A DNA stretch of 64,000 nt from Octopus sinensis (Eukaryota). The number at the start of each line of letters is the position of its first letter. The stretch's first letter is position 1. Of the stretch, positions 15,334 through 42,043 are shown piece by piece. The notes beneath the pieces were generated by a model. It made no database searches and was not told where the DNA came from. It saw only the letters and a list, made by a program, of their open reading frames with translations. The stretch spans positions 42,718,001-42,782,000 of the forward strand of contig NC_043013.1 of the NCBI RefSeq assembly GCF_006345805.1, given 5' to 3'. The translations under genes and the position numbers were made by a program.

Positions 15334-15368
<35 letters not shown>

Positions 15369-15550: not shown

Positions 15551-15603
<53 letters not shown>

Positions 15604-19313: not shown

Positions 19314-19365
19314 CCAATTTCTAGGGCGTGTTTGGATTGGATGTAATTAGTGATAGAGATATAAA
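19314..19365 (+). promoter_or_regulatory. Candidate core promoter of the PNGase F-like gene
   Basis: CCAAT at 19314-19318, ATTGG at 19336-19340 and TATAAA at 19360-19365, 77 nt before the ATG; motif-based only. Confidence 0.35.
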
Positions 19366-19441
19366 TTGTTACGAGAACAGTGGTGTGTTTACTATTGTCA
19401 AAGCGCAAGTTTGAAGTTCAGTTTTATCAAAGCCTCGTACA

Positions 19442-19953
19442 ATGGCTACTCATATGAATCTGACTTTCTTAACACTTACTGTATATCTTTTGTTTGGTCT
19501 CTCTGTCGGTGAATACCAACTCCGATATCAAAACATTCCCGGAAGGGACATACAGAAATTATCAACTTCCCATGGGGGCCAGTTACGAAGTTTTCAAAAC
19601 AATGTGGCCCTGAGGAATCTGAAGGCCCGGCAACATCACGGAAATCCCAAACGACCTACTGACGGCTTCGGCAGGTTTACTTACACACCGAACGACAAGG
19701 CCCCTCCTTTTGTTTTGAATAGCTTGGAAGGAACTTTGAAATATCCGAGTGCTTTATTCGCCAACAGTTCTCTCATATTTGTAGTCTTCGATAACCAGTC
19801 CAGTTATGTCGACTGTATGTGGCACTCGAATGAAGCCTTACTTCCACTCGTCCAGAGCAAACTCGAAGATATCCACTACGTGTTTCTACCTTCGGGAAAC
19901 GAAGATCCTTTATTGACGGCTAAATGGTTATACAAACGTCTAGAATCATTGGG
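19442..19953 (+). CDS. PNGase F-like gene exon 1 (signal peptide + N-terminal domain)
   Basis: ORF 19442..19957; donor GTAATA at 19954, phase 2. Confidence 0.85.
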
Positions 19954-22900
19954 GTAATATCTCCCTCACTCAATTTTTATCTGTCTTTCATTCTTTCTCT
20001 TTTGCTATCTGTCTCTTTTACTGGTTCAAATCAGCTGACAGAGGTACACCCGTATTTATTTATTTATTTATCTTTCCTTAATTCGTTACAGGCAACACTT
20101 TACGTTTTTATTTACAACAGTCTCTCGTTCTTGCTCGCCTCTATTTTCATTAATGATAATTTAATAATAGCTACATAACTTTGATACGAGGCGCAATTTC
20201 AAGAATATTATCAGTTTCCGGAGTTTGTTAAATGAATATTTTTGATAAGATAAAAGAATTTTAATATACAGGTATAATTTTTTTTTTTTAATGAAATGAT
20301 TTTGTTGGTATGGCCACTTGGAATGCGATAAGCCTTACAATAATAACTATGTGATCCTTGCTATTTCTAGCACGCTAAATAAGGTTTTTAACGAACTTTC
20401 ATTTATATATAATATGCGACTGAAAGAGAAAATTTAGCAGCAAAAGCACAAGGGCAAAGAGAAAGACGGGCAACTGAATCTGATTAAACCAGGGTAAAGC
20501 GACTGAAACGGATGTCTGAATATGCACAGAGATGTAGACCCGATTCTGTTTCCGCTGCTCATGACCGACTGGTTAGGGTATCTCGAGAGGAGAATATTCA
20601 AAATAACGGTGTCAGATCACAAATTGTTGATGCAACACTAAAGAGATCTTTTCTTTGGGATCATAAAAATAGGGGTGGGAGCGCTGAGGATATTATGTGG
20701 CCATGAGAGGGGGGGGCCAAAAAGTTTGAGAACCTCTGTATTAGATCATTTTAAATTTGGGTATATTTGAAAAAGTAAGGAAACGTCATTCCCATGTGTT
20801 CTCACACCACTAGACTTTTGTGTGTGTGTTTCCCTTCATCCATCTATGCACACCTATGTAAGTTCTACCAATTATCTCTATATATATAAACGGCAAAATG
20901 TCTATCTGCATGCGTCTCCTTTATACAAATCCACAATTTTTCAGTTAGAGGGCTTGCACTTTCTATGGTCATTCAAAACCGTCCAAGGGTGGTCGTGCAC
21001 ATCTTTACATTTCCCCAGTCACCCCGCAAAGCCATTAAAAAAATCAATTGAAGTGACTCTTTGATGTTTTGAGTTTTTCAATATCCAACTCCCTCACTCA
21101 GACAAACCCACCAGGTTGATCAGGCCCCCCAACGTGCATGCTAGCAGCAAGTGTATGAACCAGTTCTCTCACCCCAAAACTCCCTGGTGAATTTCTCTGC
21201 AAGCTTCACTTGCAGGTTGATTGGCCCTCATTGCTACCTCTGTAAAACTCAGTTGCTAGAGGAATTGACAAAGTGGGCATCTTCCAAAGTCTCTACAGTC
21301 CACCCCCAAAGACTCATGTTTTATTCTTCAAAACAGCAACGTGAGAATATTCCTCACAGACCAGCAAAGGAGTCTGGTGATAAGGTGACAAATCTGATTT
21401 GTTAAATTAAAAACTGTCTGTGTATTTATAAGACACAGGTGACTCAAAATGGCTGGTTACTTCTTAGTATAAGTTTTTGATACCAAAAGAATTGCAGACA
21501 AAAACTGTTAATTTATCAAAGGTTGATTAACAGAAATGATCTGACTACAAAGCAGCCTGTGTCATAAAAGAGCAATCTGATTGGCTACAAATATCCAAGC
21601 AAAAGAACGAATCATGTCACATTCCTTAGTGTTAAATGCTACATATAATGCATACATACACGATGTATATATCTATGTATCAATCAATCAATCAGTTTCA
21701 GTTCTCTGTGATCAACTAAACCCTTAAAATCAGTGCAACATCCACTGACTGAAACCAGTCAATAGAATAAAGCATAGTCAGATTATTCTAGTACAGTCAG
21801 TCTATACCTGTATTTCTCTCTCTCTCTCATTTTTCTTCTTACTCTTCCTCTTCGTTTTTGCCTTCATTGTCATTATATACAATGTGTTTTCCATTCTCCA
21901 GTGAAAGATTTTCTTCAAGGCTAACATACATTCATAAATCAATTAGGGTTAAATTAGATTTTATTATGTATAAAGTTACAGTGTGTTTTGTGTGATAGCG
22001 GTCTTGTAATAATAAGCACATGTGCGTATATTCATGTATGTGTGTATAAGAACATTTTCACTTATGTATATATATAACAATGTGCCTGTATGCAAGCATG
22101 ATGGCAAGCCGTCTTTTGCTGATAGCAGTTCTTCACAAGTGGGAAACTCAAGAGGCTAATGTGTTATGGTGCATGCTATTGTTAACAGGTTGTAACAATA
22201 GGAGCCATGTGGCTGTGATTGTTGTGTTGTAGCAAGGTGACAATAGTGGCTGTCACTGCCTAATGGTTGGACAGCAGTTTTCTAACATGGTGTCTTCCTT
22301 TTTTGAATGCCAGACTTTATCTGACTAAATGACATTTTTTTTTGTCTATTTTTATAATACAAAGCTGAGTTATGCAAAAGAAGAATTTGACTGGTCAGTT
22401 TAAACAAAATAAACATGACAGCACCCCTGCGACTCCATAGAGAGCTGAGGGCCCTGGACAAATCATATCTACATTAATATTGAGATTAAAACCTCCTATT
22501 TAAACAGACATACAAGTATAATAGTCAAGTGTACATTATCTGTGTGGCATAATTTAAATCTCTTTGTTCACTGATCTTCAATCTTTAACTTTTTATCTCT
22601 TCTATCTTTTACATGTTTCAGTCATTAGACTTGCGGTCATGCTGGGGCACCACCTTGAAGAATTTTAGTTCAACTAATCAACCCCAGTACTATTTTTGTT
22701 TTAAGCCTGGTACTTATTTTATCAGTCTCTTTTGCCAAACCACTAGGTTTTGGGGTGGGACACACACACACATGTATGGCAGGCTTCTTTCAGTTTCTGT
22801 CAACCAAATCCACTCAAGGCTTTGGTCAACCCGAGGCTATAGTAGGAAACACTTCCCCAAGCTGACACACTGTAGGACTGAACCCAAAACCTTGTGGTTG

Positions 22901-25900
22901 GGAAGCAAACTTCTTACCACACAGCCATGCATGACCTAAACAATTAGTTTTTATATGCATATTTTTTTAATAACTTTTTTTAATTGAGAATTTTTTTTAA
23001 TTATCAAATTTTTTTTTAAATTTTCACTACTTGTTTACTCTATCCCTACCCTTATTTTAATTTTTACTATTTTACCAGGACCAAGTCAAGTTCCAATTGG
23101 AAATTCAATCATAAAAATTTTCACTTTGCTATCCAGTCTGTGTCAAATTTGACCAATTGGATTCCTGACTGCTTGAATGAATGGGCATGTTCTGACCATG
23201 GTTGTGGGTATGACCAAGTGATCATTAATTTTGAAGGTAATATTCATGTTGCTATTGTTATTTTTATGGTATTCCTTTATTAATATCCTTCCTTTTTGCA
23301 GACTATTTTTTAGTGTGCTTTGTGATTTTTAGCATAACACCATAGGGAGCCAAGGCTCAAGTCAAAGCATATGTAGATAAATATTGGTTTCAAATTTTGG
23401 CACAAAGCCAGCAAATTCGGTGAGGGTAGGCGCTAGCTGATTACATCAACTCCAGTTCTCAACTGATATTCATTTTATCAACCCCAAAAGGATGAAAGGC
23501 AAAATCAACCTTGGCAGAATTTGAACTCAGAACATAAAGACATATGAAATGTCATGAAGCATTTTGCTTGGTTTGCTAATGGTTCTGCCAGCTCACCGCT
23601 TTCATATCTACATAATTGTTGAGATTAACACCTATTTAAATAGACATACAAATATGATAGACATACAAGTATAATAGTCAAGTGTACATTATCTATGAAG
23701 TTGTTTTGTCTCAGATGAGACTCTTTATCCTCTCTACTCTACGTTGTCCCTTATCTTCCATTCACCTCTAGAGAGGTTGTTTAATCCCTGATAAGACTTA
23801 AGAGTCCCCTCTACCCCATTTAGTCTCGGCACATTTATTCACTGGCACCAGAGAAGTTGTCTCAACTCTGGCAAGGCTAAAGAGATTCTTCTCTTCTTTG
23901 TGTAGTCTTTCTATGTTCTTTTCTTTTCCCCACCACTGCATTGGGAAGTGAGCCAGATACAGACCTAAAAACGGTGTGTGACCCTTGAAAAAAATAACTG
24001 AACTACGTACTACTGTCCATTCAGATGTTGTCAATCTCCAATTGTATGCAAACCAAAAAATGCTTAAAAGTATGTTAAATGCTTTTGAGACAGACACAGA
24101 ATACTCTTCTAGTGATGCAAACCCTGGAACTATTTTAAACTCAGCAAGTCTGGTACCTTATCCAGCCAATCTGAATCATATCAATACCACTCCAGACAAT
24201 GTTATGGTCACCAAATGATTCTTACATTCTGGCACTCTTTCTTTCCAAAACTAAACATTTCTTGGCCACTTTTAGATATCTGTCTTCCATTAATTGTTTT
24301 CCAATTTCAAGAATAGTTCCCATGATACCATTGTTTTAATTGTCTTGGATATCATTAACCCTTTAGCATTCAGATTATTCTGTCAAATGTAGTGCTTATT
24401 TATTCACATTGTTTTGAAATAATCATGCATTAACTTGTAGTCATCAAATTTCAATGATGTGATTGTTTATTTTTAGAACAACATTGTGAGGTAGGTGTGA
24501 CAGGCTGGATCTGACCAGTTGGAACATAAAACAAGTAGACTATTATGGCCGGTTTAAATGGTAAAGAATTAAGCTTTAAAAAAATCTGGACATTGTATTT
24601 CCTTAATTAACAACTCATTGGTTACAAGCCAAACAAAACATAAAATCTGTCTACTACCACTCCATAAATTATTTTATAAATGCTTGAATGAATTTTCTTC
24701 CTACAGGAAATCATTTGCCAGTCACTTTGAAACGCTTGGATGCACGCTATGACTGGTTACCTTCACCAAAGAACTTCATCAACAAGACTGTTGAATTAGA
24801 CATAATATGGAATGGCTGCAAACGTATCCCCCACCTTTCACCGCCAGACAAAGTTGCTTTGGTCTACAATAATGGCTGCAGCATTTTTCAACAGGTATTA
24901 CATTAAATAAACATTAGATAAACTTGGAACAATTTCAAACACATAAGATCATACAGACCCTCTTTATAACACAAAAACATATATCTTTCTTTATTAATGC
25001 TGTAATTGTAATTTGATCCTTCAGTACTGGAGTAATGAAATATATTCGATGAGATTCCAGTGAATTATTTACATTATTTACATTCGACGGATATTTGTCC
25101 TCATCTTGTTTATTGCTAACACAACACGGACATATGGTGTAGTGGTTAAGAGCACGGGCTACTAACCCCAAGATTCCAAGTTCGATTCCAAGCAGTGACC
25201 TGAACAATAACAATAATAATAATAATAATAATAATAACATCGAAAACTACCTTAGGAATGAGAACTCAGGTTCGAAATTTCCCCAAGATACCTGAAGAAG
25301 GCTGGAGAGTATATCAGCCAAAAATTGTGTTAACAAACAAGATGAGGACAAATATCTGTCAAATGTAAATAATGTACATCATTCCTCATCTTTTAAATAT
25401 AGAACTGTAGATTCCAGCGAAGAAGAAAAGAACTCGTATCTCATTTTACTTGGATAAGAATTATATTATAAAATCAGCAAACAAAAAAGACCCAAGCAAG
25501 AATGCACATATGGAAGAAAGACTCAGTTTTCAGGAAAGCCAACAGATTGAAAGCCACATTCATGTGCCAAAAATCTATTGGTCATCTTATTCTTAACTAT
25601 TAGAGCACATGCACGCGCGTGCACACACACAGAAATAACCTGGGGCTCTTTTGACATTATTGAAAGAGGCAACAGATATCAAAACTAAGTGAGAGAAAGG
25701 ATGCCAGGCATAATCAGAAAGGGCTATGGCTGGAGCAAACTACATTAAAGATGGAGATAACTGGGTAGGGGATAATGATCATGATAATGATGTTGTTCAT
25801 GATGATAAAGATTAGAAAAATTTCTTTCAAAATCTCACTATCTCTTTCCCTCTTTTTCCTTCTTTCTGTCTCTCTCTTCCCATTCTCGTAGATCACCAAT

Positions 25901-28900
25901 GTACAGGCTGCTGGTTACAAAGGAGCGGTTATCATGATGCGTCCAGGTGAACCACTTCAAGACATGAACTGTAATGGAGAGCAGTGCACAAAACCATTGA
26001 CCATCTTTGCAACAGCGGTACCATATAGTAAACCAGTATTACAGTGAGTTAAATTTCTCTCCAATCCTTATCCTTTTCTCATTTGCTACAGTGATAAAAT
26101 CAGACAACCCTCAATAAGATTTTTATTTATTTCTTATTGAGTGCAAAAGAGAAAAATTTAATCTTAAAGATAGCCATGTATCATATTATGCATATTGTGA
26201 ATATAATAGCTGTGTTTCTTGCAATTGTTAATGCCAATTCAGCCTTGATTGAGCACATCTCTGATCAAAGGTGTTCAATTCATGACAATCCCACCTTTGC
26301 TTAACCCTTTAGTGTTTAAACCGGCTATATCCGGCCCAAATATTCTAAATGTTTTACATTCAAACTGGCGATATCTATCCTCTCACACTTAACCTACAAC
26401 GTCATTCTAAAAATAAACAATCACATCACTGAAACCTCAAAGCTATAAGATAATGCATGATCAATTCAAAACAATTTGAGTGAAAAAGTATTATATTTAA
26501 CAGAGTAATCTGAATACTAAAGGGTTAAGATGTAATGTATCCAGATGTATTATTATCTTAGATGCATATGTCTCCTTTATTTTTCTAAGGTAATGCAATG
26601 TAATTTGAAGATTTTTCACAGATTAAATGTATAGGTATATCAGGTACACTAGGCTATAGCACTTTCTTTCCTATTGCATGGAGTTGAAACCTTGACAGTC
26701 CATAAAGTCCAAGTAGACGAGTTACATGCAAATATGATAAGACTATTGCAACAAATTATGAATATTATTCTCTTTGACAAGATCAGGAATGAAGAGATCC
26801 TATGATAGAAATTTTCATTAATAGAAATTTACATTGGTTGAAATAGAAATTTACGTTAATAGAAATTTACATTTAAAGGCGGTGAGCATATAAATAAATG
26901 ACATGTTATTGTAAATATATCTATATCTTTGACAGTTAAATAAAATACCTATCTGTCCTTCAATTTATGTCTCTCTTTCTCTCTCTTCTTCTCTCCCTCC
27001 CTTGCTCTCTCTTTCTCTCTCACTATTAGTCTATCTACACATCATTCACATTTTATTTATCATGTTGATTAATTTATATAAATATAAATATGGGGTAGCC
27101 ATGTATCTCTTCTTGAGCAAGATACCTGTCTCTGTCTGTCTATCATACTTTAACCCTTTAGGGTTCACATTATTCTGTCCAATGTAATGCTTATTTATTC
27201 ACATGGTTTGAATTAGTCTTGCATTACCTTGTAACTTTGAGGTTTTGATGAGGTAACTGTTTATCTTTAAAAGGATGTTGTGAGAGGCCAGATCTGGCTA
27301 GTTTGAATATAAAACAGGTAGAATATTTGGGCCAGATATGACCTGTTTAAATACTAAAGGCTTGACCCCTCATGGAGGTGTGTGGCTTAGTGGTTAGGGT
27401 GCTGGACTCGTGATTAGAATATTGTGGTTTCAATTTCTGGATCAGGCAACACGTTGTATTCTTGAGTAAAACCTTTCATTTCACATTGCTCCAATCCACT
27501 CAGCTGGCTAAAATGAGTAATCCTGTGATGGACCGGTATCCCATTCAGGTGGGGAATGTATATGCCACAAAACCAGGAAACTGGCCCTTATGAGTCAGCA
27601 TGTATCGAGAAAGTAATTTTACCGTTTCTTTTTATAAAGCCCCCCCTCCCTCCCTCAATACTACACCTCCTCAGTTGAGGGTGTCTTGTCTTGTGAGTTA
27701 CTTAGTGGACTCACTGGTACTAGTGCCATGTAAAAAGCACCCAGTTCCAGTACACTCAGTCAAGTGGTTAGCATTAGGAAGGGCAACCATCTGTAGAAAC
27801 AGTATCATAGCAGACATTGGAGCTTGGTGCAGTCCTCTGGCTTAGCATCTTTATCAAACTGGCCAACCCATGCCAGCATGGAAAGAAAAACATTAAATGG
27901 TGATGAAGATGATATAAAGATATTTGAGCAGAGGCAATGCAAGCAGTAACCTAAAGGAACATTACTAAAATCCTCACACAAAGATTTTAGTAATGTTCCT
28001 TTAGTTACTGCTTGCATTACCTCCGCTCAGATTAAGAAGTGGAATATAGCTCATTTGGAGCACTACAACTCCAGTCTGTATTATATCTTGAGTATTGTTA
28101 TTACTAGCTATCTCAAGATATAACTGTGTATTTTGATATAAAGATATAAATAATGTATAAATTAAGGGGAGGAAAATGTTTCTAAATAACTTTCATTTTC
28201 ATTTCATACTCTGTTCTGTTTTATACAGCAATGGTCCATTAACTATAAAATTCCAGAACACACCATCACAAATTTTCTATATGGCCATTGATCCATTGGG
28301 TAAACTGACAGAAGTCGGATGGATGCTGTATCCATCAGCAAACTTTTTGGTATGGCAAGCAGAATGGTGAGTGTGCATTTTGATATGGTTTATGTTTGTT
28401 TTATTACATTTTATTACATTTATTATATTTAATATTTCCCATCTAAATTTAATCTTAATTGAATATTTATGTAATTATTTAGATTTCATATTTTGTAATA
28501 ATTTTTAAAGATCTATGCCCATGTTTTTAAGTGTGTGACGCTTCAGCCGTTTGTGCATGTATGTGTGTGTGTGTATTAATGCAAATGCATGTGTATGTGA
28601 TTATGTGTCTGTAACAATGCTTGTGTCTGTTTGCCCTTCTGTGTATATTTGTGTCAATGTGTGTATGAGTAAAGGCGGCGAGCTGGCAGAAACATTAGCA
28701 CGCCGGGCGAAATACTTAGCAGTATTTTGTCTGCCGTTATGTTCTGAGTTCAAATTCCGCTGAGGTCGACTATGCCTTTTCTCCCTTCAGGGTTGATAAA
28801 TTAACTACCAGTTACACACTGGGGTCGATGTAATCAACTTAATCCCTTTGTCTGTCCTTGTTTGTCCCCTCTATGTTTAGCTTCTTGTGGGCAATAAACA

Positions 28901-31900
28901 AATAAGAGACATTAGCATGTTTAGCAGTATTTCATCTGTCTTTACATTCTGAGTTCAAATTCCGCTGAGGTCGACTTTGCCTTTCATCCTTTCGGGGTTG
29001 ATAAATTAAGTACCAGTTGTGTACTGGGGTTGATCTAATCGACTGGCCCCTCCTCCAAAATTTCAGGCCTTGTGCCTAGAGTAGAAAAGAATGTGTGTAT
29101 GAGTATGTCTGCCCATCCATCAGTGCAAGTGTGTGTGTGTGTGTGTTTGTCAAAGTGTGTGTGTATATCTGTATCTGTCCATTTGTATTTGTGTCAATGT
29201 ATGTAATGAGTATGTCTGTCACCTCACCCTCTGTATGAGTATTTGTTAATGTGTGTGTATGTGAATTATATCTGTCCATCCACCCTTTTGTGTTTGTGTG
29301 TGTGTGTTTGATTGTGTGTCTGTCCATCCGTGTGTGTTTGTGTCAATGTGTGTATGAGTAGGCCAGCCCATCCATCAGTGTGTGTGTATATGTGTCCCTG
29401 TTTGTGTGTGTATTATAATTTTACCATTATTTGTAAGAATGTCACTTCTCTAAATTCAATATTTCAGGATGAAATTTCAAAATAAACTCGAGAGAAGACT
29501 CTGGAACAAAGACCTTCTTGTGCCATTATTTGAGAATGCCACAATGCAAGGCAAAAGTGGAATTGTTGCCAATGTTACATTACCACCTTTGGAAAGTAGG
29601 TATTTCGCAAACTAGGTATTTCACAAACCTGTCTTTTCACTGATATGCCATTGTTTCTGTGGTCAAAGTTAACCCTTTTGGTGCCATATTTCTGTTAAAA
29701 TACAATAACTTTACTCTCTTTTACTTGTTTCAGTCATTTGACTGTGGCCATACTGGAGCACCGCCTTTAGTTGAGCAAATCGACCCCAGGACTTATTCTT
29801 TGTAAGCCTAGTACTTATTCTATCGGTCTCTTTTGCCGAACAGCTAAGTTACGGGGACGTAAACTCACCAGCATCAGTTGTCAAGCGATGTTGGGGGGAC
29901 AAACACAGACACACAAACATATACACACACATACATACATATATATATGTATATACACATATATACGACGGACTTCTTTCAGTTTCCGTCTACCAAATCC
30001 ACTCACAAGGCTTTGGTCAGCCCGAGGCTATAGTAGAAGACACTTGCCCAAGGTGCCACGCAGTGGGACTGAACCCAGAACCATATGGTTGGTAAGCAAG
30101 CTACTTACCACACACCCACTCCAGCGACTTTATTTCAAATAATTTTTAAAATAGTGAAAAATTTATTAAAATAATTTTGTCATTATTAAGCTGGTATTTA
30201 GAACATAATTTAACATGAAATTTTGATAGAAGGAAGGTTTTAATTTTGATCACTTTCAAACAAGAAGTTTATTTAATAAAATCAGGAGCATTTTGGGTGG
30301 GTCACTATTTTAGAAAGACTTTCAGCTATTGACAGTATTATATTTGTAAAATATGATTTACTCTTTTTTACTCTTTTACTTGTTTCAGTCATTTGACTGT
30401 GGCCATGTGGGAGCATCGCCTTTAGTCGAGCACATCAACCCCAGGACTTATTCTTTGTAACCCTAGTACTTATTCTATCGATCTCTTTTGCCGAACCGCT
30501 AAGTTACGGGGACATAAACATACCAGCATCGGCTGTCAAGCGATGTTTTGTGGACAAACACAGACACAAACATACGTGCGCGCATACACACACATGTATA
30601 TATACGATGGGCTTCTTTCAGTTTCCTTCTACCAAATCCATTCACAAGGCTTTGTTTGGCCCAAGACTATAGTAGAAGATATTTGCCCACGCAGTGGGAC
30701 TGAACCCGGAACCATGTAGTTCGTAAGCAAGCCACTTACCACACAGCCACTCCTACGCCTATAATATGGTTATATTTTACCTTCTTTTCAACTCTATCAA
30801 CACCCTGCCAAGGTCTATAAACATGTTCTACTACTGCATCCTAGTGAGCACAGCACAACAGTTTCACAAGAGCAAGAGGTACTTTTACAACACTGACTAT
30901 ATGTGTTCAGTTTAGCAATGAATAACTGTTGTGGTACTGAGGCTGGCCATAATAGGGAGAGTAAGTCGCCCTTTCCATCCATAGACTGGGATGGTACCTT
31001 GAATAAGTGCTAGCAACCTCTCCACCTCCTGTGTCAGGGAGATGGTGAAGATGTTGACAGCAGGCCCAGAGAAGCAGATAAGGTGAAGACATTGGCAGCA
31101 GAATGTCAAATAACTGACAAGGCAGAGGAGTCCTACATCAGCGGCTTGAACCATACTCACTGTACTCTCATGCATCACATGGTATCTGACATGGAGGCCC
31201 AGGGAGGCAGATATGGTGAAGACATTGGCAGCAGGACATTGAATAACTGACAGGGCAGAGAAGTCCTAGACCAGTGGCTTGAAGGTTATTGTGACCAAGC
31301 AAATGAGCTGTACTACCAAACATTGGTTTGGGCATCAACTAGCAAGTGGGCTGCAACTGCAAGGCAGCCTCATCATTGACCATTGCACTCACCATGCTCA
31401 TTGCACTCTTGTACACCACTTAGTATCTGGCATGGAGTCCCAGAGAGGCAGTCTAGCAGTGGAGACAATGCCAACTGCCTTATTCACCACCTGTAAAAAG
31501 CACCATCTGAACGTGGCCGATGCCAGCGCCACCTTGACTGGCTTTTGTGCCGGTGACACGTAAAAAGCACCAACCAATCGTGGCCACTGCCAGCCTCCCC
31601 TGACACCTGTGCCGGTGGCACATAGAAAGCACCCACTACACTCACGGAGTGGTTGGCATTAGGAAGGGCATCCAGCTGTAGAAACACTGCCAGATCAGAC
31701 TGGAGCCTGGTGCAGCCTCATGGCTTCCCAGACCCCGGTCGAACCGTCCAACCCATGCTAGCACAGAAAACAGACATTAAACGATGATGATGATGAAGGC
31801 TCTAAACAGAGCAGTCAACGTCGACCTACAGTGGACAGTCGATGATGATGACTGTTGCAGCACTGTGGTGGTATGATTAAAGTAATATAATGGAACAGAT

Positions 31901-32617
31901 GTGATAACTATGACAATTTAAAGAATCCTATGACCATAACTGTCTTTTGTCTGCTAAACCTTTTAGTATTCAGATTATTTTAACAAATGTAATTCTTGCT
32001 TATTCACATTGTTTTGAATTAATCATGCATTATCTCATAGGTCCAAGATTTCAATGACATGACTGTGTACTTTTAGAATAACATTATAGAGTAAGTATGA
32101 GAGGCTGGCTCTGGCTGGTTTGAGTACAAAATAAGTGAAATATTTGGGCTGGATATGGCCAGTTTAAATGTTTAAGGGTTAATCTCCATTTTCTTCCCCT
32201 ATGTCCTTTATCATTCCAGCGTTGAGAACCTACTCAACCTTTGAACTACAAGTGAACCTGTCTTGTCCTGGCACCAGAGATGAAGACTGCCCTGCATGGG
32301 ACCGCACTGTTGGGTTACATGTGTGCTGTAATCAGTCTTCCCCATTGTGCAACATGGAACTAGGACGATGGATCACACCATTCCGCAGGTATTTTATTTT
32401 TCTTATCTTTTACTTGTTTCAGTCATTTGACAGCCACCATACTGGGGTACCACCTTGAGGGAGATTAGTCAAATAAATCAATCCCAGGACATTTTTTTTA
32501 ACCCCGAGAGTTATTCTATTGGTTTCTATTTGGTGAACTGCTAAGTTACAGGGATGTTAACACACCAACAACTGCTGTCAAGAGGAGGTGGAGGACAAAC
32601 ACAAGCACGAAGGTACG

Positions 32618-32690
<73 letters not shown>

Positions 32691-33662: not shown

Positions 33663-33696
<34 letters not shown>

Positions 33697-36600
33697 GTTT
33701 GTGTGTCTGTGATTGTCTACCCAACATTGCTTGACAACTGATGCTGGTGTGTTTACGTCCCTGTAACTTAGTGGTTCGGCAAAAGAGACCGATAGAATAA
33801 GTTCTAGGCTTACAAAGAATAAGACCTGAGATCGATTTGCTCAACTAAAGGCGGTGCTCCAGCATGGCCACAGTCAAATGACTGAAACAAATAAAGGAAT
33901 ATTCTCAGACGAATTCATATTTCAACAAAATTATATTATATCAACAGTTATTTCCTCTGCTTATCGTTTATGCATATGTAACAAAGAAAAAACATTTTGA
34001 TTCACCTGTCCGCTGGTTTTGAGGATAATCAAATCAAAATAGTGAGTTTGAGCCACTCACCCAGTGAGTATTTCTGCCAAATTTGGTGAAAATCCCATTC
34101 AGCCATTTCCAGTAATTTTGCAAACACACAGACGGGTGACTACAACACCCTACTTTAACTTATGCACACAGGGTAATTAAACATATATTTATACACATAT
34201 ACATACACAAACATACATACATAGAAATATATGTCCAAATAAATGCACATTTATGTGTGCAAATATGTACACAAATATATACAAATGCATACACATATAA
34301 ATACAATCACAAATAAATACATTCATAGACATGTATAAATACATACACACACACACAAACACATTCACACTCTCTTCCCACAATAGTTATGTTCTTCATC
34401 TTCTATGCAAACTAAACTGCACCTCCTTTAAATTCTTTTGCCACCAATGTTAAATTAGTCCTGCTAATCGACCTACTTCTTATGAAGCATAATGAAAGAC
34501 TTGCCTAAGGTGCTACACAGTAGAACTAAGCCTAAACCACATGGTTGAAAAGAAATTTGCTAAACACAGAGACAGGTGTATACACATGAGGCTTGATCAA
34601 AAAGCATCAGGGTTGGCACTATAAAAAGAAAACCACAACACATATCAATTCGGCATTTAATTACCTTCAAAGCAGTCTCCTTCTGAAGCCACACACTTTA
34701 TCAAACATTGTTTCTATTGATAGAAGCATTCCTGGAACTCCTTTTTGGGGGATGGAGAGTAGCCACATCGTTGCATCCCTTTCAAGTGGGATTTGAGTTT
34801 TGGAAAGAGGAAAAAGTCATGAGGGGAAAGATTTGGGAAGTATGGTGGTTGTTGAACATGGGGAATGTTGTGCCAAAAACTGCGCTGAATGGACAGGTGC
34901 TTTGTCATGGTAGAACTGCTTCTCATTAGATGTGTAGTGTGATGGAAGAAAAGGACAACAGAAAAAGAAGCAAACGAGAGAAAGAAATACAAAAGGCCTT
35001 ACCTGTTGACCTCGGCGGAATCAGCGGTCACTCTCACGAATTAAACATGTCTTGCCTCTCTGCCATCTCAGCTCAAACTGCCCACACGTGCTTCCTGCCC
35101 ACGCATGACCCTTTCACTCTTCCGCTGGCCCTTGCAGTCTTCACTTCCCTTTTGCCTCATCTACCATCCTCTCCACCAACACCACATAGCTCATCACAGC
35201 CCATAACACTGCTAACACCACAAGATGCATGCAATTCTGATAGCGACACTGCTTCCAAGTACTGCTATAAACAACGGAAGTGAGCAAGAATGTTATTTAA
35301 TGTGCATGCATGACAGAGTTCAAGGCCAATCAGTGCCAGGCAGCTTCACTCTGTGTACTTTAATTCTCTTACCACAGCAGTGGTCCTGATACTTTTTGAT
35401 CAAACCTTTTATATGCATATTACATGTAGACACATTATATTCTTATTACATTCTTTTCTCCTCTCCACTTTTTAGGCGTATTGGAATTTGGGTAACAGAT
35501 GTGAGTCCCCTACTACCCTTGCTGACCTCTCGCCAATGCACCTTCCGCATGTTCACTGACCCCTGGGCATCACCATGGAAGCCATCAGCCTCTCTCAGGT
35601 TTTCAAACCCCCACATGAGCAGTAAGTCTGTTTTTTACTTTTCACTTCTAGTTTTCTAATGCTAAAGATGGTTTAACGTTAGCTGAGCTCTTTTAACAGA
35701 GTTAGCTTAAAGATTTTGCTATTGTTCTTTTGAGCATAGGTCAGTCCTGATCTAGCAAAATTATGACCAAAGGCATTCCTGTATTTTATCAGGTTCAGTC
35801 CCACTGTACAGCAGCTTGAGCAGGTGTCTTCTACTATAATTCTGGACTGACCAATGCTTTGCGAGTGAATTCGGTATATAGAAACTATGGAAATCCGAAC
35901 ATGCATGTGTGTGTGTCTTTGTGCTTGTATTTGTACTACACACACACACACCACTTGACAACTGGTGTTGGTTTGTTTATTTTAAGTTCTGAACTTAAAC
36001 CCTACTTCTATGCCAAGAAAAAAGACAAATGGAAGCCATAGGTGTAATACTTTGCTGATGTAAAAAATTTTGTTTTGTTAAAGTCCTTGAGTGAGGAAAA
36101 ACTGGTGAGTAATAATATGAACAAGTTTACGCAAAATCTAATTTTATGTAAACTGTATTGACAAGGAGAAAGAAGTGAGAGAGATATTCCAAACAATGAT
36201 GGTGGGGATTATTTACGACTGTTTCTACCACGTTTGTAATGTTGGAAGGGAGTCATAATTCAGGATCAAAGAAGCTGGTCTTTCATCAAGGATGTGAAGG
36301 TGGCTATTTCTTATCCCAATGTATTCCATGGTAACAGAACTCATCATCTAAAACTACTTCCATCAATAATTGAAAACCAGCAGAGTTGTCCTCTGTGTAG
36401 TTGCTCAATTTGCTAAGAATAGCAACCAAATATCCCTCAAATATCTTCTTAGTATCTTAAAACTGGCATACAGAATTAACTGGCACTTCAACAGTTACAG
36501 CAATGAGGGTTCCAGTTAATCCAATCAATGGAACAGCCTGCTTGTGAAAGTAACATACAAGAGGCTGAGAACTCCACAGACATGCATACCCTTAATGTAG

Positions 36601-39600
36601 TTCTCAAGGAGATTCAGTGTAACACAGACTGTGACAAGGCTGAGCCTTTCAGTTACAGGTACTACTCGTTTTTGCCAGGTTAATGGACTGGAACAATATG
36701 AAGCAAAGCGTCTTGCTCAATAACACCAATACACCACCAGGTATCAAACTCACACTCATGAGCTGTAATACCCTAATACCCTAACCTCTTAGCCATGTGT
36801 CTTGACTGACATACAGAATAATATGGTCTTGGATGTATTATGCTTAGTAAAAAGACAAGATAGTCATAACTCAAATGCTTTTAACGCCTTGACGCCGGTA
36901 TTACCCGAAGCATGCGAGACACTGCTCCGGTTTTTTGTCTAATGAAACCACACAAACACACAAGTGCCAATGAGCTCGCATCTATTTATGTTCACCGTTA
37001 CAATAACATAGCGTCGTACATTTACATCTACCGGTTTATGAAAACGAACTATGTGAAGCTATTTATCATAATATGATATGCACGAGTTATTCTGCTCAAG
37101 TTCAGAAAATAGCTTGCGTGTGGTACAACTCAAAACACAGTATTATGCATGTAAAGTATCCGCATGTCAGCATGTCATTGGTCTACTGCTAGTCTATTGA
37201 CTTGAACGTAACCTAAAATAGCTAAGATAATGCATGGGACGGTGAGCACATGCACCTCAAGAGATAAAGTACATGATAGCGAACGTAAACATACGTCAGC
37301 CGCTAAAAAGTCCATGATAGATGTAGGGCAGCTCTACATCGTATATTCACGATAACCGCGGGTAGGCAAGCAAAAGTGTGATCGCATATTTGCATCAACC
37401 GTTGTCAAGGGGTTAAGCATAGGTTTACCTGATCATGGCTCACTTGGGAGAAAATAACAATTGTAAGGTTAGTATTTGTGCGTAAGTTTAACTAATGTGA
37501 GTAACAACTCAATGTCAAATAGAGAATTGTAAGATTTTTGTTTGTTTCTGTACAGGTTCAAATTCTTCATATCCAGAAGAAGCTAAGCCACTTTTCCTAC
37601 CAGGTGCAGTATTTGACCACAATTACAACAATCACTTCAAACCATATTTCTTTGAAGTTGACCAAAAATATAGCAAGGTTGGTGCTTTATTTCATGTTTT
37701 ATAATGTCATAGCATTGAACGATATTCTAAACAGCTTAATCTAGTTAATATTTGAGAGTTGTACATGTCCAACAAGTCACTTGATATGAGATTATTTGCT
37801 GAAGCTAAAGTAATTACAAAGGGGAAGAACTGTTTTAGCCATTTGTTTCTGTTTAATTCGTCAACCATAATACAGAGTGTATTGTATACATTTTATCATG
37901 GCACCATCATGATTGAGGTTGCTTTGTCTCCTGCAAGTCTAATGAACACCCACTATTCTGAGAAGTGTTTACCAGATAAGCATATTTTATAGTATCTCTT
38001 AACTTTGTCATTTGCATATTTCTAATGACATACAACTGGCTTTTTAACTAACTTTTAGAATACTCTAATATTATTACATTGACTCTTTAGCTTTCAGATT
38101 ACTTTGTCGAATGTAATCCTTATTCATTCACATTGTTTTGAATTTGTCATACATTATTTCACTGCACTTTGATGATGTGATAATTTTTTTTTAGAATGAT
38201 ATCATCAGGTAGGTGTAAGAGACTTGATCTAGCTAGTTTGAACAAAAAATAGATAGAATATTTGGGCTAGATATGGCCAGTTTAAATAGAAAATGGTTAA
38301 TAATTTAGTGTTTAATATAGCTTGGGTGGTGAGCTGGCAGAATTGTTAGCACACTGGGCAAAATGCTTAGTGGTATTTTATCTGCCGTTACATTCTGATT
38401 TCAAATTCCACCGAGGCTGACTTTGCCTTTCATCTTTTCAGGGTCGATAAATTAAGTACCATTTATGCACAGGCGTTGATGTAATCGACTTAATCCCCTT
38501 GTTTGTCCCCTGTATGTTTAGCCCCCTGTGGGCAATAAAGAAATAAATATTGAAATTTGTTGTTAATTATTTAAGGCAGCGAGCTGGCAGAATCATTAGC
38601 ATGCCGGGTGAAATGCTTAGTGGTATTTTGTCTGTCTTTACATTCCAAGTTCAAATTCTGTTGAGGTCAACTTTGCCTTTCATTCTTTTGGAGCCGATGA
38701 ATTAAGTACCAGTTATATACTGGGATCGATCTAATCACCTGACCCCCTCCCCAAAAGTTTCGGGCCTTGTGCCTAGAGTAGAAAAGAATATAGCCAAGCT
38801 GGCAGAATCATTACTGTATCAAACTGCTTAGTAGCATTTCTTCTGGCTCTTTAGATTCTGAGTTCAAATTCCACTGCTTCTAGATTTGATCCGTGTGTGG
38901 CACTTTGAGGAAGTGTCTTCTACCCTAGCCTTGGATTCAACAATACCTTATGAATGAAAATTGGATAGAAAATGGTTTGTATGTGCATGAGTGTATGTGT
39001 TTGTGAATATCTAATTATTTTTACACCTGTTCTTCTCATATTCTTTTCTACTCTAGGCACAAGGCCCAAAATTTTTGGGAAGGACCAGTTGATTAGATCA
39101 ACCCCAGTATGCAACTGGTATTTAATTTATTGACCCCTAAAGGATGAAATGCAAAGTCAACCTCAGTGGAATTTGAACTCGGATCGTAATGACTGACAAA
39201 ATACCGCTAAGCATTTCGCCCCGCATGCTAATGTTTCTGCCAGCTTGTCACTTGCTCTTTTCATATTGGCATGGGTTACACAAGACAGCCCTTCCTTGGA
39301 CCAAATGTCTCTTTTTTTCAAGTAATGTACTTTATTCTACTGTTCTTTGCACATCAAACTCCCAATTTTGGGGACATAGACAAATATCACTGCTATCCAA
39401 GCAGTGTCAATGCAAAGACACAGACAAACACATATATGTATGAATAATGAAATTCTGCATCTAACAAATTTCATCCTTAGGGCATAGGCCAACCTGAAAG
39501 TGTTATAGAACTGAACCCAAAATATGTGGTTCCAAAGAAAACTCCTAAAGCACACAGTTATGCTTGTACATTTGTATAGATTAACATGGAGCAAACAAAT

Positions 39601-42043
39601 ACTAATTCTGTGGAACACAAAACCTTATGACATATCTAGTGTACATATAGGTGTATCTTCAGCGAACAATGAAGCGAGTACCAGATAGAATACAAGGGTC
39701 TATATGATTGAGTAAAGCCTAGAGAGGTAGTGTTCAAGTCTGGCAGCAGTTCAGTGACTAAACAGTAAAAGAATTCCTCTTGCAAAAATATCGCAGCTTT
39801 TTGCCAATGTGTAAGATTAATTAAGCAAGTCTTCTCTGTCCTTCCTCTTCAGATCATGATATATGCTGTGATAACAGGACACGGTAGTGATGAAAACGGA
39901 TGTGGAGAGTTCTGTGTGACATCCCACCACTTTAACATCAACGGAAAAGTATACAACATCACATTTGATAACGCAGGTAAGTAGTTCTTTAATTCTACCT
40001 TATCCTATTTTTGTTGAATAATAGCATCGTTGATTACAGGCTCTCAACAGACCAGTCAATGGCTTGTGACATTATACAATAGCTTGTATGAGAAAGGATG
40101 GCCTGTGTAATAATGAACTTTGTTCAAAAGCACCAATTTATTGCATGTGTCGACATCTTTTGCTGAAAGATACATGCAGACATATCACCATCATCATTTT
40201 CACATCTGTTTTTTCATAGTAGCATGAGTTAGATGAGACTTAAGGCAGTACTTTCAATGGCTGGATGCTGTCCCTGTCACCATCCCTTACTTGTTTCCAG
40301 GTACAGCATTTATTCCTCTTTGTCTTTTGCACAATAAACTATACAACAGCTGGAGTGGAGGCGCAATGGCCCAATGGTTAGGGCAGCAGACTTGCGGTTG
40401 TAAGAATACAGTTTCGATTTCCAGACCAGGCATTGTGAGTGTTTATTGAGCAAAAACACCTAAGCTCCACGAGGCTCTGGAGGGGTCGTGGTGGTGAAGA
40501 TCACTGTACTCTTTCACCACAACTTTTTCTCACTATTTCTTCCTACTTCTGCCACAAAGAATGGTTTAGATCTTCACTCATTAAAAGCCACTGTTTACAG
40601 AATGAGGATAACAACGTAGCTTTCGCACCCGTGCAACCGCCAGTCTATCATGGTGGGTGGATCTTCAAGTTGCACACATTCTTAGTAGCTCAGAGTAGGC
40701 TCGAATTAGAGATTATTCTTTGTGGCTAATGGCGCGAGTCCAGATTAGAAGAAGACAACAGCTGGACATGTTTTGATGATAGATGTACACCTAAACAGTG
40801 TCACACACATGCTCATCTCTAAGGGGTGCACTGGATGGCACTGCCCCCCCCCACCCCCACACACACACACACACTATTCAATGGTACAACTTCAGATTTA
40901 TAAAATACAGTTTACGAAAATCTTCTCACAATACAAATTAGTGCCCACCCAGAATATTCTGAAGCATCTCCCAAGCACCAAAGTCTGGCAATGGGCCTGG
41001 TCACACATTACAGCTAACTGGATATGGACCACTAAATACCATCTAGTTGCTCTGTATATTAGCCCATGGCACCCTCCATTTTTATGATATAAATAAATTT
41101 GTTTAGGTGCAGGAGTGGCTGTGTGGTAAGTAGCTTGCTTACCAACCACATGGTTCTGGGTTCAGTCCCACTGCATGGCATGTTGGGCAAGTGACTTCTA
41201 CTATAGCCTCAAGCCAACCAAAGCCTTGTGAGTGGATTTGGTAGACGGAAACTGAAAGAAGCCCATCATATATATGTCTATGTATATATTTGTGTGTCTG
41301 TGTTTGTCCCCACAACATTGCTTGACAACTGATGCTAGTGTGTTTACATCCCCGTAACTTGGCAGTTAGGCGAAAGAGATCAATAGAATAAGTACTAGGC
41401 TTACAAAGAATAAGTCCTCAACTAAAGGTGGTGCTCCAGCATGGCCGCAATCAAATGACTGAAACGAGTAAAAGAGAGAGTAAAGAGTTAAGAAACTTAA
41501 AACTGAATGTGACTTTACTCTCCTTAACTGTCAAATGTAATGTTTATTTATTCACTTTGTTTTAAATTAATCCTGCAGTATCTTTTAGCTGAGATTTCAA
41601 TTGTGTGATTGTATATTTCCCGAATGACATTGTAGGGTAGGTGTGAGAGACAGGATCTAGCTGGTTTGAACACAAAGTGGGTAGAGTATTTGGGCCAGAT
41701 ATGGTCAGTTTAAATACTGAATGGTTAACTCAAATTGACTTAGTGGTGTCATTTCTCACCTTCTTTCTGTTTCTCTTTTTCTCTCTCTCTCGCAGGAACT
41801 CCACTCGGTTGCGCAAACAAAGCACCAATAGGTGTTGTTCCAAATGAACATGGAACTTGGCTGTATGGACGTGATGGTTGGTGTGATGGTTTGCAGGTTG
41901 ATCCCTGGCTCATCGATATCACAAATGACACTAGCAAACAAAATGTTATCAAATATTTTGGTTGGTATCAGGGCAAAACTCCAAACCCACAAAGGAATCC
42001 TGGAATCATATCGCTCTATTCATATTTGATATTTTATAAATAA
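19442..42043 (+). CDS. Secreted PA-domain / PNGase F (peptide:N-glycanase F)-like protein, 11 exons, 694 aa
   Basis: Exons 19442-19953, 23079-23236, 24707-24894, 25892-26043, 28229-28366, 29468-29595, 32220-32388, 35476-35621, 37556-37677, 39853-39976 and 41796-42043; all introns GT-AG with matching phases; 2085 nt including TAA. Hydrophobic N-terminal signal. PA motif KVALVYNNGCSIFQQITNVQAAGYKGAVIM. PNGase F motifs CPAWDR, ELGRWITPF, TDVSPLLPLL, MFTDPW, ITGHG, GCGEFC and GTWLYGRDGWCDG. Confidence 0.9.
22595..22930 (-). mobile_element. SINE family S2 (degraded)
   Basis: Reverse-complement match to S2. Confidence 0.7.
23079..23236 (+). CDS. Exon 2 (NFHFAIQSVSNLTNWIP...CSDHGCG)
   Basis: Acceptor tttaccag; donor GTAATA; phase 2 to 1. 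Confidence 0.85.
23395..23600 (-). mobile_element. SINE family S3
   Basis: ggatgaaaggcaaaatcaaccttggcagaatttgaactcagaac. Confidence 0.7.
24359..24568. mobile_element. piggyBac-like MITE
   Basis: TTAA|CCCTTTAG ... AAAGAA|TTAA; family member of 26305-26524. Confidence 0.8.
24707..24894 (+). CDS. Exon 3 (KRLDARYDWLP; start of PA domain)
   Basis: Acceptor cctacag; donor GTATTA; phase 1 to 0. Confidence 0.88.
25068..25376 (+). mobile_element. tRNA-headed element with degenerate hammerhead-like 3' end and inverted terminal arms
   Basis: A box at 25135-25145, B box GTTCGATTCC at 25180-25189; CTGAAGA at 25292-25298 with a GGCTG/CAGCC stem; arms 25068-25125 and 25325-25376 are inverted. Confidence 0.65.
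25892..26043 (+). CDS. Exon 4 (PA domain)
   Basis: Strong pyrimidine tract plus cgtag; donor GTGAGT; phase 0 to 2. Confidence 0.88.
26305..26524. mobile_element. piggyBac-like MITE, intact (220 bp)
   Basis: TTAA TSDs at 26301-26304 and 26525-26528; termini CCCTTTAG / CTAAAGGG. Confidence 0.88.
27150..27365. mobile_element. piggyBac-like MITE
   Basis: ttaaccctttag...aatactaaagg. Confidence 0.75.
27373..27600 (+). mobile_element. SINE family S4 (diverged)
   Basis: tggaggtgtgtggcttagtggttaggg...aaactggcccttatgag. Confidence 0.6.
27703..27915 (+). mobile_element. SINE family S1
   Basis: aaaaagcaccc...cccatgccagcatggaa...gatga tail. Confidence 0.7.
28229..28366 (+). CDS. Exon 5 (GWMLYPSANFLVWQAEW)
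   Basis: Acceptor ttatacag; donor GTGAGT; phase 2 to 2. Confidence 0.88.
28673..29085 (+). mobile_element. Two tandem SINE S3 copies
   Basis: ggcggcgagctggcagaa... twice. Confidence 0.8.
29085..29410. repeat. Degenerate GT-rich minisatellite (ctgtccatcc / gtcaatgtgtgtatgagta units)
   Basis: Imperfect repeats of about 45-60 bp. Confidence 0.5.
29468..29595 (+). CDS. Exon 6 (LFENATMQGKSGIVANVTLP)
   Basis: Acceptor atttcag; donor GTAGGT; phase 2 to 1. Confidence 0.85.
29712..30760 (-). mobile_element. Two SINE S2 copies (29712-30125 and 30368-30760)
   Basis: Reverse-complement full-length matches. Confidence 0.85.
31490..31797 (+). mobile_element. SINE family S1
   Basis: Repeated aaaagcacc units plus S1 body and (GAT)n tail. 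Confidence 0.8.
31957..32182. mobile_element. piggyBac-like MITE
   Basis: Ends aagggttaa, 37 nt before the exon 7 acceptor. Confidence 0.7.
32220..32388 (+). CDS. Exon 7 (CPAWDR...ELGRWITPF)
   Basis: Acceptor cattccag; donor GTATTT; catalytic Asp motif. Confidence 0.9.
32405..32858 (-). mobile_element. SINE family S2
   Basis: Starts 16 nt after the exon 7 donor. Confidence 0.75.
33120..33898 (+). mobile_element. Cluster of two S1 fragments and one S2 (33497-33898)
   Basis: Family motifs as above. Confidence 0.75.
34565..34935 (-). pseudogene. mariner transposase C-terminal remnant
   Basis: Minus-strand QPPYFPNLSPHDFFLFPKLKSHLKG matches the mariner HPPYSPDLAPxDFxLFPKLK motif. Confidence 0.8.
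35476..35621 (+). CDS. Exon 8 (WVTDVSPLLPLL...MFTDPW)
   Basis: Acceptor tttttag; donor GTAAGT. Confidence 0.9.
36885..37412. mobile_element. CpG-rich piggyBac-like non-autonomous element (about 530 bp)
   Basis: TTAA at 36881-36884 and 37413-37416; termini c(g)ccttgac / gtcaagggg. Confidence 0.65.
37556..37677 (+). CDS. Exon 9 (PLFLPGAVFDHNYN)
   Basis: Acceptor tgtacag; donor GTTGGT; phase 1 to 0. Confidence 0.85.
38085..38302. mobile_element. piggyBac-like MITE (diverged)
   Basis: Same internal sequence as 26305-26524; ends ggttaa. Confidence 0.65.
38325..39245. mobile_element. SINE S3 cluster (three + strand copies, one - strand copy at 39050-39245)
   Basis: gagctggcagaat... repeated. 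Confidence 0.75.
39853..39976 (+). CDS. Exon 10 (ITGHGSDENGCGEFC)
   Basis: Acceptor ctcttcag; donor GTAAGT; catalytic Glu motif. Confidence 0.9.
40355..40560 (+). mobile_element. SINE family S4
   Basis: tggaggcgcaatggcccaatggttagggcagc...gtttcgatttcc. Confidence 0.75.
41110..41480 (+). mobile_element. SINE family S2
   Basis: Full-length match. Confidence 0.85.
41520..41730. mobile_element. piggyBac-like MITE (diverged)
   Basis: Family sequence ending ggttaa. Confidence 0.6.
41796..42043 (+). CDS. Exon 11, terminal (GTWLYGRDGWCDG...YSYLIFYK*)
   Basis: Acceptor ctcgcag; TAA at 42041-42043. Confidence 0.9.

Follow-up and report, generated by a model that had tools for sequence, protein, structure and literature searches.

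Gene structure and transcription

The analysed window was a stretch of 64,000 nucleotides of Octopus sinensis DNA (assembly GCF_006345805.1, contig NC_043013.1, positions 42,718,001 to 42,782,000 of the forward strand), and all positions given here are counted from its first letter. Positions 19442–42043 of the plus strand contain a real, expressed animal gene of 11 exons, which is very probably the single-copy octopus ortholog of Ngly2, the animal "acid PNGase". The exon model was rebuilt by choosing the top-scoring GT/AG sites and requiring that the phases agree, and gave a coding sequence of 2085 nt for 694 aa, with no internal stop and closed by a single terminal TAA; a first-pass annotation of the raw sequence had likewise spliced 11 exons to a stop-free product of 694 aa. 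All ten introns are of the GT..AG type, 997–3125 nt in length and filled with host repeats. An in-frame TGA is found at 19412–19414, 27 nt upstream of the ATG, and an AATAAA sequence at 42057, downstream of the TAA stop.

RNA contigs of 1.9–2.2 kb from four runs belonging to three studies showed the joints 19953|23079 and 23236|24707 exact to the base. Reads cover junctions 1 and 2, and junctions 3–10 (8 of the 10) were placed by their splice signals, matching phases and the collinearity of the homology. One contig extended 1246 nt beyond exon 3, as compared with 1227 nt of predicted coding sequence, and the contig of run X15 began at 19294 and continued unbroken into exon 1, giving the minimum extent of a contiguous 5′UTR (19294..19441, + strand). 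Spliced transcripts of this Ngly2-type gene were seen in three independent studies and in sister species, and two of the three RNA variants were synonymous. A paralog search through the 2.72-Gb genome returned this sole locus, the other match being insignificant (E 2.65).

Exons and domain organization

The closest solved relative is chain A of PDB entry 9LWG (9lwg_A), Si:dkey-256h2.1 or zebrafish Ngly2, an acid, lysosomal, ovary-enriched PNGase (J Biol Chem 2025, PMC12753239), the same zebrafish protein that the first-pass annotation had named. Its chain is collinear with 10 of the 11 octopus exons (1, 3, 4, 5 and 7–11 by search, exon 2 by eye), and the PNGase exons are about 53–69% identical to it as counted from the HMMER midlines, with E down to 7e-32. 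The numbering of 9lwg_A equals that of the paper plus 25.

Exon 1 (19442..19953, +; aa 1–170) contains the start codon, a putative signal peptide (aa 1–23), an N-terminal linker and most of a thioredoxin-like domain. By eye and hydropathy, used as heuristics, the N-terminus MATHMNLTFLTLTVYLLFGLSVG shows the n/h/c organization typical of signal peptides, and no other stretch of the protein is strongly hydrophobic, in agreement with the signal peptide previously noted. No family was matched by exon 1 in the Pfam search; it aligned with 9lwg_A 52–160 (E 4.8e-7), and its donor 19953|GT was confirmed by RNA joints from four runs. Exon 2 (23079..23236, +; aa 171–223), with both junctions confirmed by RNA, completes the first thioredoxin-like segment and leads into the PA domain, and its stretch EWACSDHGCGYDQVIINF is similar to zebrafish SWGCGGHNCGLGQVVFSS (chain 200–217) in a by-eye comparison of the two. 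The first part of the PA domain is encoded by exon 3 (24707..24894, +; aa 224–286; acceptor confirmed by RNA; 9lwg_A 223–276, E 0.027) and the second part by exon 4 (25892..26043, +; aa 287–336; 9lwg_A 279–323, E 2.5e-4), which scored 14.2 bits with the Pfam PA family PF02225, below the cut-off. Exon 5 (28229..28366, +; aa 337–382; donor GTGAGT) encodes the return strand of the thioredoxin-like domain and the start of a linker helix (9lwg_A 335–377, E 7e-11).

The PA domain is inserted in the thioredoxin-like domain, as in Ngly2: exons 3–4 align with 9lwg_A 223–323, inside the PA domain (residues 186–318 in the paper), and exons 1 and 5 align with 52–160 and 335–377, overlapping the thioredoxin-like segments of the paper. 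A listing of the cysteines showed no CXXC motif across all 694 aa.

The least supported exon is exon 6 (29468..29595, +; aa 383–425), assigned to the linker and the first strands of the PNGase domain. Alone it gave no match in PDB or Pfam searches; in its favour are phases that match on both sides, good splice sites, a length close to that of the zebrafish gap (chain 378–421), the length of the RNA contig, and the fact that BLASTP alignments with bacterial homologs, beginning at octopus residues 357–387, include it. Exon 7 (32220..32388, +; aa 426–481) encodes a part of the PNGase N-domain with the C441–C449 pair, W452-D453-R454 including the catalytic Asp, and ELGRWITPF (9lwg_A 422–474, E 7e-20, about 64% identity), and exon 8 (35476..35621, +; aa 482–530) continues this domain with FTDPW, containing D510 and W512 (9lwg_A 478–520, E 1.8e-12). 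The N-domain of the PNGase fold passes into the C-domain in exon 9 (37556..37677, +; aa 531–571), whose phases fit exons 8 and 10 and whose match to 9lwg_A 525–562 is weak (E 1.3) and correctly placed, beginning where the acceptor 37555 predicts. The C-domain is encoded by exon 10 (39853..39976, +; aa 572–612; donor GTAAGT, score 7/7), with ITGHG (H581) and GCGEFC (C588, catalytic E590, C592) and a match to 9lwg_A 563–597 (E 1.9e-13), and by exon 11 (41796..42043, +; aa 613–694), with C618, GTWLYGRDGWCDG (R638, W641, C642) and the TAA. Exon 11 aligned with 9lwg_A 600–687, up to the last residue of the chain (E 7e-32), and with PNGase F (1PNF/1PGS) 229–300 (E 0.004).

Matches to PF09112 in exons 7 and 8 (37 and 31 bits, cut-off 22.4 bits) and to PF09113 in exons 10 and 11 (40.5 and 57 bits, cut-off 25 bits) identified the PNGase F domain that Ngly2 possesses; with two exons above the cut-off for each family, they support the PNGase F-type assignment made earlier. 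The octopus protein follows zebrafish Ngly2 in the order of its parts, from the putative signal peptide through the CXXC-less thioredoxin-like domain and the PA domain to the PNGase F domain, and 12 N-X-S/T sequons are present.

Other splice sites were considered. Donors at 19879 and 19926 for exon 1 and acceptors at 24721 and 24847 for exon 3 were rejected, being contradicted by the RNA joints, and acceptors at 37576, 37603 and 37609 for exon 9 were disfavoured because the 9lwg_A homology already sets in at the residue expected from acceptor 37555. Extra exons within 32388–35476 and 39976–41796, considered since positions 72–138 of the Pfam profile were unmatched, were rejected because the D-to-W spacing is that of zebrafish and the flanking exons fit each other in phase and follow on from one another in 9lwg_A.

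Active-site residues

The six motifs quoted in the first-pass annotation were all found in open frames of the plus strand: CPAWDR and ELGRWITPF in 32183–32455, FTDPW in 35390–35656, ITGHG and GCGEFC in 39769–39981, and GTWLYGRDGWCDG in 41744–42040. The equivalences to PNGase F given there (W-D-R, D for E118, W120, E206, R248 and W251) hold in alignments with both PNGase F and zebrafish Ngly2, and together with the Pfam matches they support a PNGase F-type N-glycanase, probably of the secretory pathway.

In zebrafish Ngly2 the replacements D421A and E555A abolish activity, W480A leaves about 4% of it, and Trp480 stacks on GlcNAc2 and beta-Man (PMC12753239). Zebrafish D421, W480, H546 and E555 correspond to octopus D453, W512, H581 and E590, with D–W, W–H and H–E spacings of 59, 69 and 9 residues in octopus versus 59, 66 and 9 in zebrafish. 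Both acids essential in Ngly2 are present (zebrafish/octopus AHWDHT/PAWDRT for D453 and NCGEFC/GCGEFC for E590), as is the equivalent of Trp480 (KTAPW/FTDPW for W512). The active-site histidine pair of Ngly2 is half conserved: His546 is kept as H581, and His422 is replaced by Arg454, the equivalent of Arg61 of PNGase F; in addition, Asp510 stands where the fish enzyme has Ala.

The "full catalytic set" previously claimed is thus that of Ngly2 and not the full chitobiose-binding set of PNGase F, of which W452, R454 and W512 are kept and Trp191 is replaced by His581 (ITGHG); Glu118 is replaced by Asp510. Cysteines occupy the positions of the three PNGase F disulfides (51–56, 204–208 and 231–252) at C441/C449, C588/C592 and C618/C642, and would be expected to be bonded likewise.

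Proposed function

From these correspondences, the putative signal peptide would direct a 694-aa glycoprotein into the ER. In the mature protein, a thioredoxin-like domain lacking a redox CXXC, whose zebrafish counterpart serves for dimerization, is predicted to hold the PA domain as an insertion and to be joined through a linker helix to a PNGase F domain of two jelly rolls. Asp453 and Glu590 would serve as the catalytic acids, and the chitobiose-mannose core would be bound by Trp512, His581, Arg454, Arg638 and Trp641. The reaction would set free a glycan whose chitobiose end is intact and would convert the Asn to Asp. Enzymatic activity, an endolysosomal location, an acid optimum and dimer formation are predicted for the octopus protein, and a role in the processing of yolk or egg glycoproteins would be a pure extrapolation.

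Zebrafish Ngly2 has a pH optimum of 3.5, colocalizes with Lamp1, forms a homodimer and is expressed in the ovary (PMC12753239). The suggestion in the first-pass annotation of an extracellular or lysosomal enzyme agrees with this lysosomal location. In the literature, no activity, pH or localization data were found for any invertebrate member of Ngly2.

Alternative explanations

The octopus protein could belong to the same family and fill another niche, as a secreted, near-neutral PNGase of the digestive gland, salivary or venom secretion, egg jelly or immunity and not a lysosomal acid enzyme, because its active site is more PNGase F-like. Arg454, replacing the fish His422, is the Arg61 of PNGase F, Asp510 lies at the position of Glu118, where zebrafish has Ala, and the mature protein has a calculated pI of 8.4. 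The acid activity of the fish enzyme has been tentatively ascribed to His422 and His546, a proposal made for fish and not a demonstrated definition of the family (PMC12753239). However, His581 (the equivalent of His546) is kept, and the octopus protein has the entire thioredoxin-like/PA/PNGase architecture of its lysosomal zebrafish counterpart; that the histidines set the pH optimum is itself a hypothesis, and Arg may be ancestral and without bearing on pH, as the long bacterial relatives mix Arg or Tyr at the position equivalent to 454 with the GHG His. A near-neutral secreted niche is accordingly regarded as possible and rather unlikely.

Far less probable is a relative without catalytic activity that would bind N-glycans in the manner of a lectin or chaperone and leave them uncleaved. 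Such a protein might be suggested by the replacement of Trp191 of PNGase F and by the diverged N-terminal half (E 5e-7 to 0.03), but the change of Trp191 to His is common to the active zebrafish enzyme, and D421, E555 and W480, essential there, are all conserved together with the disulfides and R638/W641.

Bacterial contamination, a recent horizontal insert or a decaying pseudogene, to which the mainly bacterial distribution of the fold and the 29–36% identity of the nearest bacterial relatives (Myxococcota-type long forms) over the PNGase domain could point, has next to no probability and is refuted for practical purposes by the intron structure and spliced RNA, since the ten GT-AG introns carry host repeats (the introns had already been taken to exclude contamination), spliced transcripts come from three independent studies and from sister species, the frame is intact with two of three RNA variants synonymous, identity is about 60% to zebrafish versus at most 36% to bacteria, and orthologs are reported from sponges to fish (PMC12753239).

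The reading as an Ngly2 ortholog is hence preferred. Within it, the pH profile of the octopus enzyme may differ from that of the fish enzyme because Arg454 replaces His422 and Asp510 replaces Ala. There is some chance, though not a large one, that this hybrid active site, combining an Arg61-like Arg, an Asp near the Glu118 position and the fish-like His546, might shift the pH optimum or the core-glycan specificity. If invertebrate Ngly2s generally carry Arg, His422 and a strictly acid profile would be a fish specialization, and action outside lysosomes would be conceivable for the ancestral animal enzyme. With Arg for His422, the octopus enzyme would lend itself naturally to testing the proposed histidine-based explanation of the acid optimum and might also be of use as a deglycosylation reagent.

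Comparison with known systems

The reading of the raw sequence recovered the correct 11-exon model and the correct functional call. The finding in octopus is correct but already known: the family and its function were described in 2025, when cloning, activity assays, mutagenesis, a cryo-EM structure and a knockout were reported for zebrafish Ngly2 (PMC12753239). The functional novelty suggested earlier is therefore out of date. Supplementary Figure S3 of that report lists by accession the orthologs of Octopus bimaculoides, O. sinensis, O. vulgaris and Sepia pharaonis (PMC12753239). Apart from the interest of Arg454, this is an ordinary ortholog that had been catalogued before.

NGLY1/Png1, the cytosolic PNGase, catalyses the same peptide:N-glycanase reaction as the octopus family with a different fold, unrelated and transglutaminase-like, with a Cys-His-Asp triad, and acts in cytosolic ERAD at neutral pH (PMC12753239, introduction).

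Bacterial PNGase F of Elizabethkingia (PDB 1PNG/1PNF/1PGS) has in common with the octopus protein both Pfam domains, the catalytic Asp60 and Glu206, W59-D60-R61, W120, R248, W251 and the three disulfide positions. It differs in its length of 314 aa, without thioredoxin-like or PA domains, in Trp191 and Glu118 (His and Asp in octopus), in low overall similarity (E 0.004 to 0.7 per exon) and in working at pH 7.5–9. Three long PNGase F-like proteins of 574–620 aa (L006–L008, from Myxococcota, Sandaracinaceae and "Proteobacteria" MAGs) are 29–36% identical over octopus residues 357–694 and share the GHG His, the CxExC disulfide, GTWxYGRxGWC and an N-terminal extension of 250–350 aa, in which no Pfam PA or thioredoxin match was found and similarity was at most marginal (E 0.16). 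W512 is aligned in L007 only, D510 is conserved in none of the three, and the bacterial long forms have no introns. The GHG His common to both hints that this Myxococcota-type subclade, and not classical PNGase F, may be the bacterial sister group.

The classic "acid PNGase" activity is due to the Ngly2 family, as are the free N-glycans found in fish eggs, and free egg glycans are lost in Ngly2 knockout zebrafish (PMC12753239). As compared with zebrafish Ngly2 (662 aa), the octopus protein (694 aa) is weakly similar in its N-terminal half and differs in Arg454 for His422, Asp510 for Ala478 and an interval from W512 to H581 that is longer by three residues; the four-part architecture, the catalytic Asp and Glu, Trp480, His546 and the C-terminal end are alike in both.

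Gene Structure and Transcription

The host assembly is a 2.72-Gb animal genome, and the window is AT-rich and laden with repeats. For the gene at 19442-42043 (+), each GT and AG in the candidate open segments was scored, and only phase-compatible combinations were retained. The top-scoring chain consisted of 11 exons with a CDS of 2085 nt, ending at its sole TAA, and this phase-consistent best chain reproduced exactly the 694 aa given in the first-pass annotation, which had proposed a secreted PNGase F-type N-glycanase. The six peptide motifs quoted there were all found in open plus-strand frames at the expected positions. Each of the ten introns has GT..AG ends and a pyrimidine-rich acceptor, and their lengths range from 997 to 3125 nt; an in-frame TGA lies 27 nt 5' of the ATG and an AATAAA 14 nt downstream of the stop codon. 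A genome-wide search found no second locus of the N-glycanase gene in the 2.72 Gb.

Exon 1 was present in public RNA runs of six studies, which represent this organism along with two sister organisms. RNA contigs from four runs (three studies) were aligned to 19200-25199, and in each run one contig of 1.9-2.2 kb spanned exons 1, 2 and 3 and continued beyond 24894. These contigs omit 3125 nt (GT..AG) up to 23079 and then 1470 nt (GT..AG) up to 24707, and no RNA contig covered unique intron sequence in this region, which marks them as products of splicing. RNA thus fixes to the base the two 5'-most junctions, formerly the ambiguous ones, and shows a 5'UTR that is unbroken from 19294 or further upstream. 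Past exon 3 the model predicts 1227 nt of coding sequence and the longest contig continues for 1246 nt, which fits the eight downstream exons and a very short 3'UTR. The other eight joints are predicted at 24894|25892, 26043|28229, 28366|29468, 29595|32220, 32388|35476, 35621|37556, 37677|39853 and 39976|41796. Three variants were observed in the contigs, those at 19579 and 24735 being synonymous and the third, 24842 C>T in exon 3 (contigs of runs X1 and X2), replacing Pro269 of the PA domain by Leu; this P269L difference is probably allelic.

Within 19200-25199, intron repeats alone attracted unrelated RNA contigs, which were very deep at 22600-23000, 23200-23600, 24200-24600 and 25000-25200. 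The introns are filled by copies of one short interspersed repeat, found on the plus strand at 22589-22936, 29771-30139, 30426-30716 and 32502-32825 and, as the same type, on the minus strand at 33386-33844 and 41059-41318; GYSRRHLPKVPRSGTEPRT is common to the translations, and every copy carries a (TA/CA)n-like microsatellite. Elsewhere in the window, an imperfect TA/CA-rich simple repeat of about 650 bp (15082-15740) produces spurious long 'YIYIY/CVCV' ORFs on both strands. At 55957-57917 (+) lies what is left of an LTR-type retrotransposon, whose three frames overlap and encode a gag-like ORF matching DUF7041 (87 bits), an aspartyl protease of the retroviral kind and part of an integrase core; at 47664-48341 (+) another gag-like ORF matches DUF7041 less strongly (28 bits) and is probably a further decayed retroelement copy. 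A LINE-like element at 60673-62815 (+) comprises an ORF1 of 478 aa with a CCHC zinc knuckle and, after it, a second ORF that extends toward the window end and contains an APE-type endonuclease domain (Exo_endo_phos). Pieces resembling this ORF1 lie at 43615-44557 and 58166-58594.

Domain Organization and Active-Site Residues

In Pfam, N-glycanase_N (PF09112) on exons 7 and 8 and N-glycanase_C (PF09113) on exons 10 and 11 both scored above the curated cut-off. Exons 1, 3-5 and 7-11 were each searched singly against PDB chain sequences, and all nine matched, in strictly collinear order, the same chain, 9lwg_A 'Si:dkey-256h2.1' (687 residues), which is the zebrafish acid PNGase Ngly2. The thioredoxin-like domain is represented by exon 1 (chain residues 52-160) and exon 5 (335-377), the PA domain by exons 3 (223-276) and 4 (279-323), and the PNGase domain by exons 7 (422-474), 8 (478-520), 9 (525-562, a weak match), 10 (563-597) and 11 (600-687, E 7e-32, reaching the last chain residue). 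Exon 2 was placed at 200-217 by visual comparison with the zebrafish stretch. Exon 6 (linker helix and first strands) was the only searched exon to give no PDB match; it is backed by its phase, splice signals and length, and the alignments with homologs from bacteria extend across it.

Chain numbers in 9lwg_A exceed those of the published description by 25 (D446 = D421, E580 = E555), and the published numbers are used for the zebrafish residues below. In the alignments of the octopus exons to zebrafish Ngly2 and PNGase F, D453 corresponded to D421 and D60, E590 to E555 and E206, W512 to W480 and W120, H581 to H546 and W191, R454 to H422 and R61, and D510 to A478 and E118, respectively; R638 and W641 aligned with R248 and W251 of PNGase F, whose three disulfide positions all hold cysteines in the octopus protein. 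The residue table proposed from the sequence was therefore correct. As judged from these alignments, the octopus active site is that of Ngly2, with two positions nearer PNGase F than the fish enzyme. The published text pairs Ngly2 W420 with PNGase F W191, and His422 and His546 with W59 and R61 (PMC12753239), at odds with the sequence alignment, in which W420 = W59, H422 = R61 and H546 = W191; the authors may have matched these residues by their place in the structure and not by sequence.

Comparison with Bacterial and Animal Relatives

A scan with exon 7 of one genome per prokaryotic species gave eight loci. Three encode long proteins of 574-620 aa (L006:1948-3807, L007:2086-3807 and L008:954-2678) in Myxococcota-type MAGs (labelled Myxococcota, Sandaracinaceae and 'Proteobacteria'), with 29-36% identity to octopus residues 357-694; their N-terminal extensions (250-350 aa) matched no Pfam family. 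The other five are Bacteroidota proteins of 375-412 aa, which have GWG instead and lack the CxExC disulfide; the one compared (L009) shows only about 28% identity to octopus. The long bacterial proteins have the GHG histidine and the CxExC disulfide pair in common with animal Ngly2, which makes them a possible bacterial sister group to the animal enzymes. Arg454 is probably ancestral in the GHG subgroup, because the long bacterial GHG proteins bear Arg or Tyr at the equivalent position (nine sequences compared, without a tree).

The gene behind the long-known fish 'acid PNGase' was identified by Honda et al. (J Biol Chem 2025, PMC12753239), who reported the cryo-EM structure 9LWG of zebrafish Ngly2, a homodimer formed via the PA domain and a thioredoxin-like domain without CXXC. 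The enzyme is active at pH 3.5 and inactive above pH 6, has a broad glycan specificity that includes core alpha1,6-fucose, loses its activity in D421A and E555A, and retains about 4% in W480A. It colocalises with Lamp1, its expression is ovary-restricted, and free egg glycans are almost entirely lost in the knockout (PMC12753239). The octopus gene is very probably an Ngly2 ortholog whose product is an active PNGase that enters the secretory or endolysosomal pathway. We would infer, as a leaning rather than a conviction, that the enzyme is strictly acid and lysosomal like its zebrafish counterpart; the main rival, that its pH profile is shifted or that it acts as a secreted protein, appears unlikely. 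A catalytically dead protein is highly improbable with D453 and E590 in place, and is effectively excluded. An artefact or contaminant, to be set against spliced transcripts and ten GT..AG introns, is effectively excluded too, its probability being negligible.

Orthologs of Ngly2 occur from sponges to fish and in some bacteria, with none in tetrapods, and the legend to Fig. S3 of the same paper gives accessions for the proteins of Octopus bimaculoides, O. sinensis, O. vulgaris and Sepia pharaonis (PMC12753239); no further paper on the family was found in the literature searched. The first-pass finding is thus accurate, yet previously known: family, fold, catalytic residues, location and one physiological role are already published, and the cephalopod orthologs had been listed before. 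The remaining interest lies in the enzymology of invertebrate Ngly2, above all in Arg454 and Asp510.
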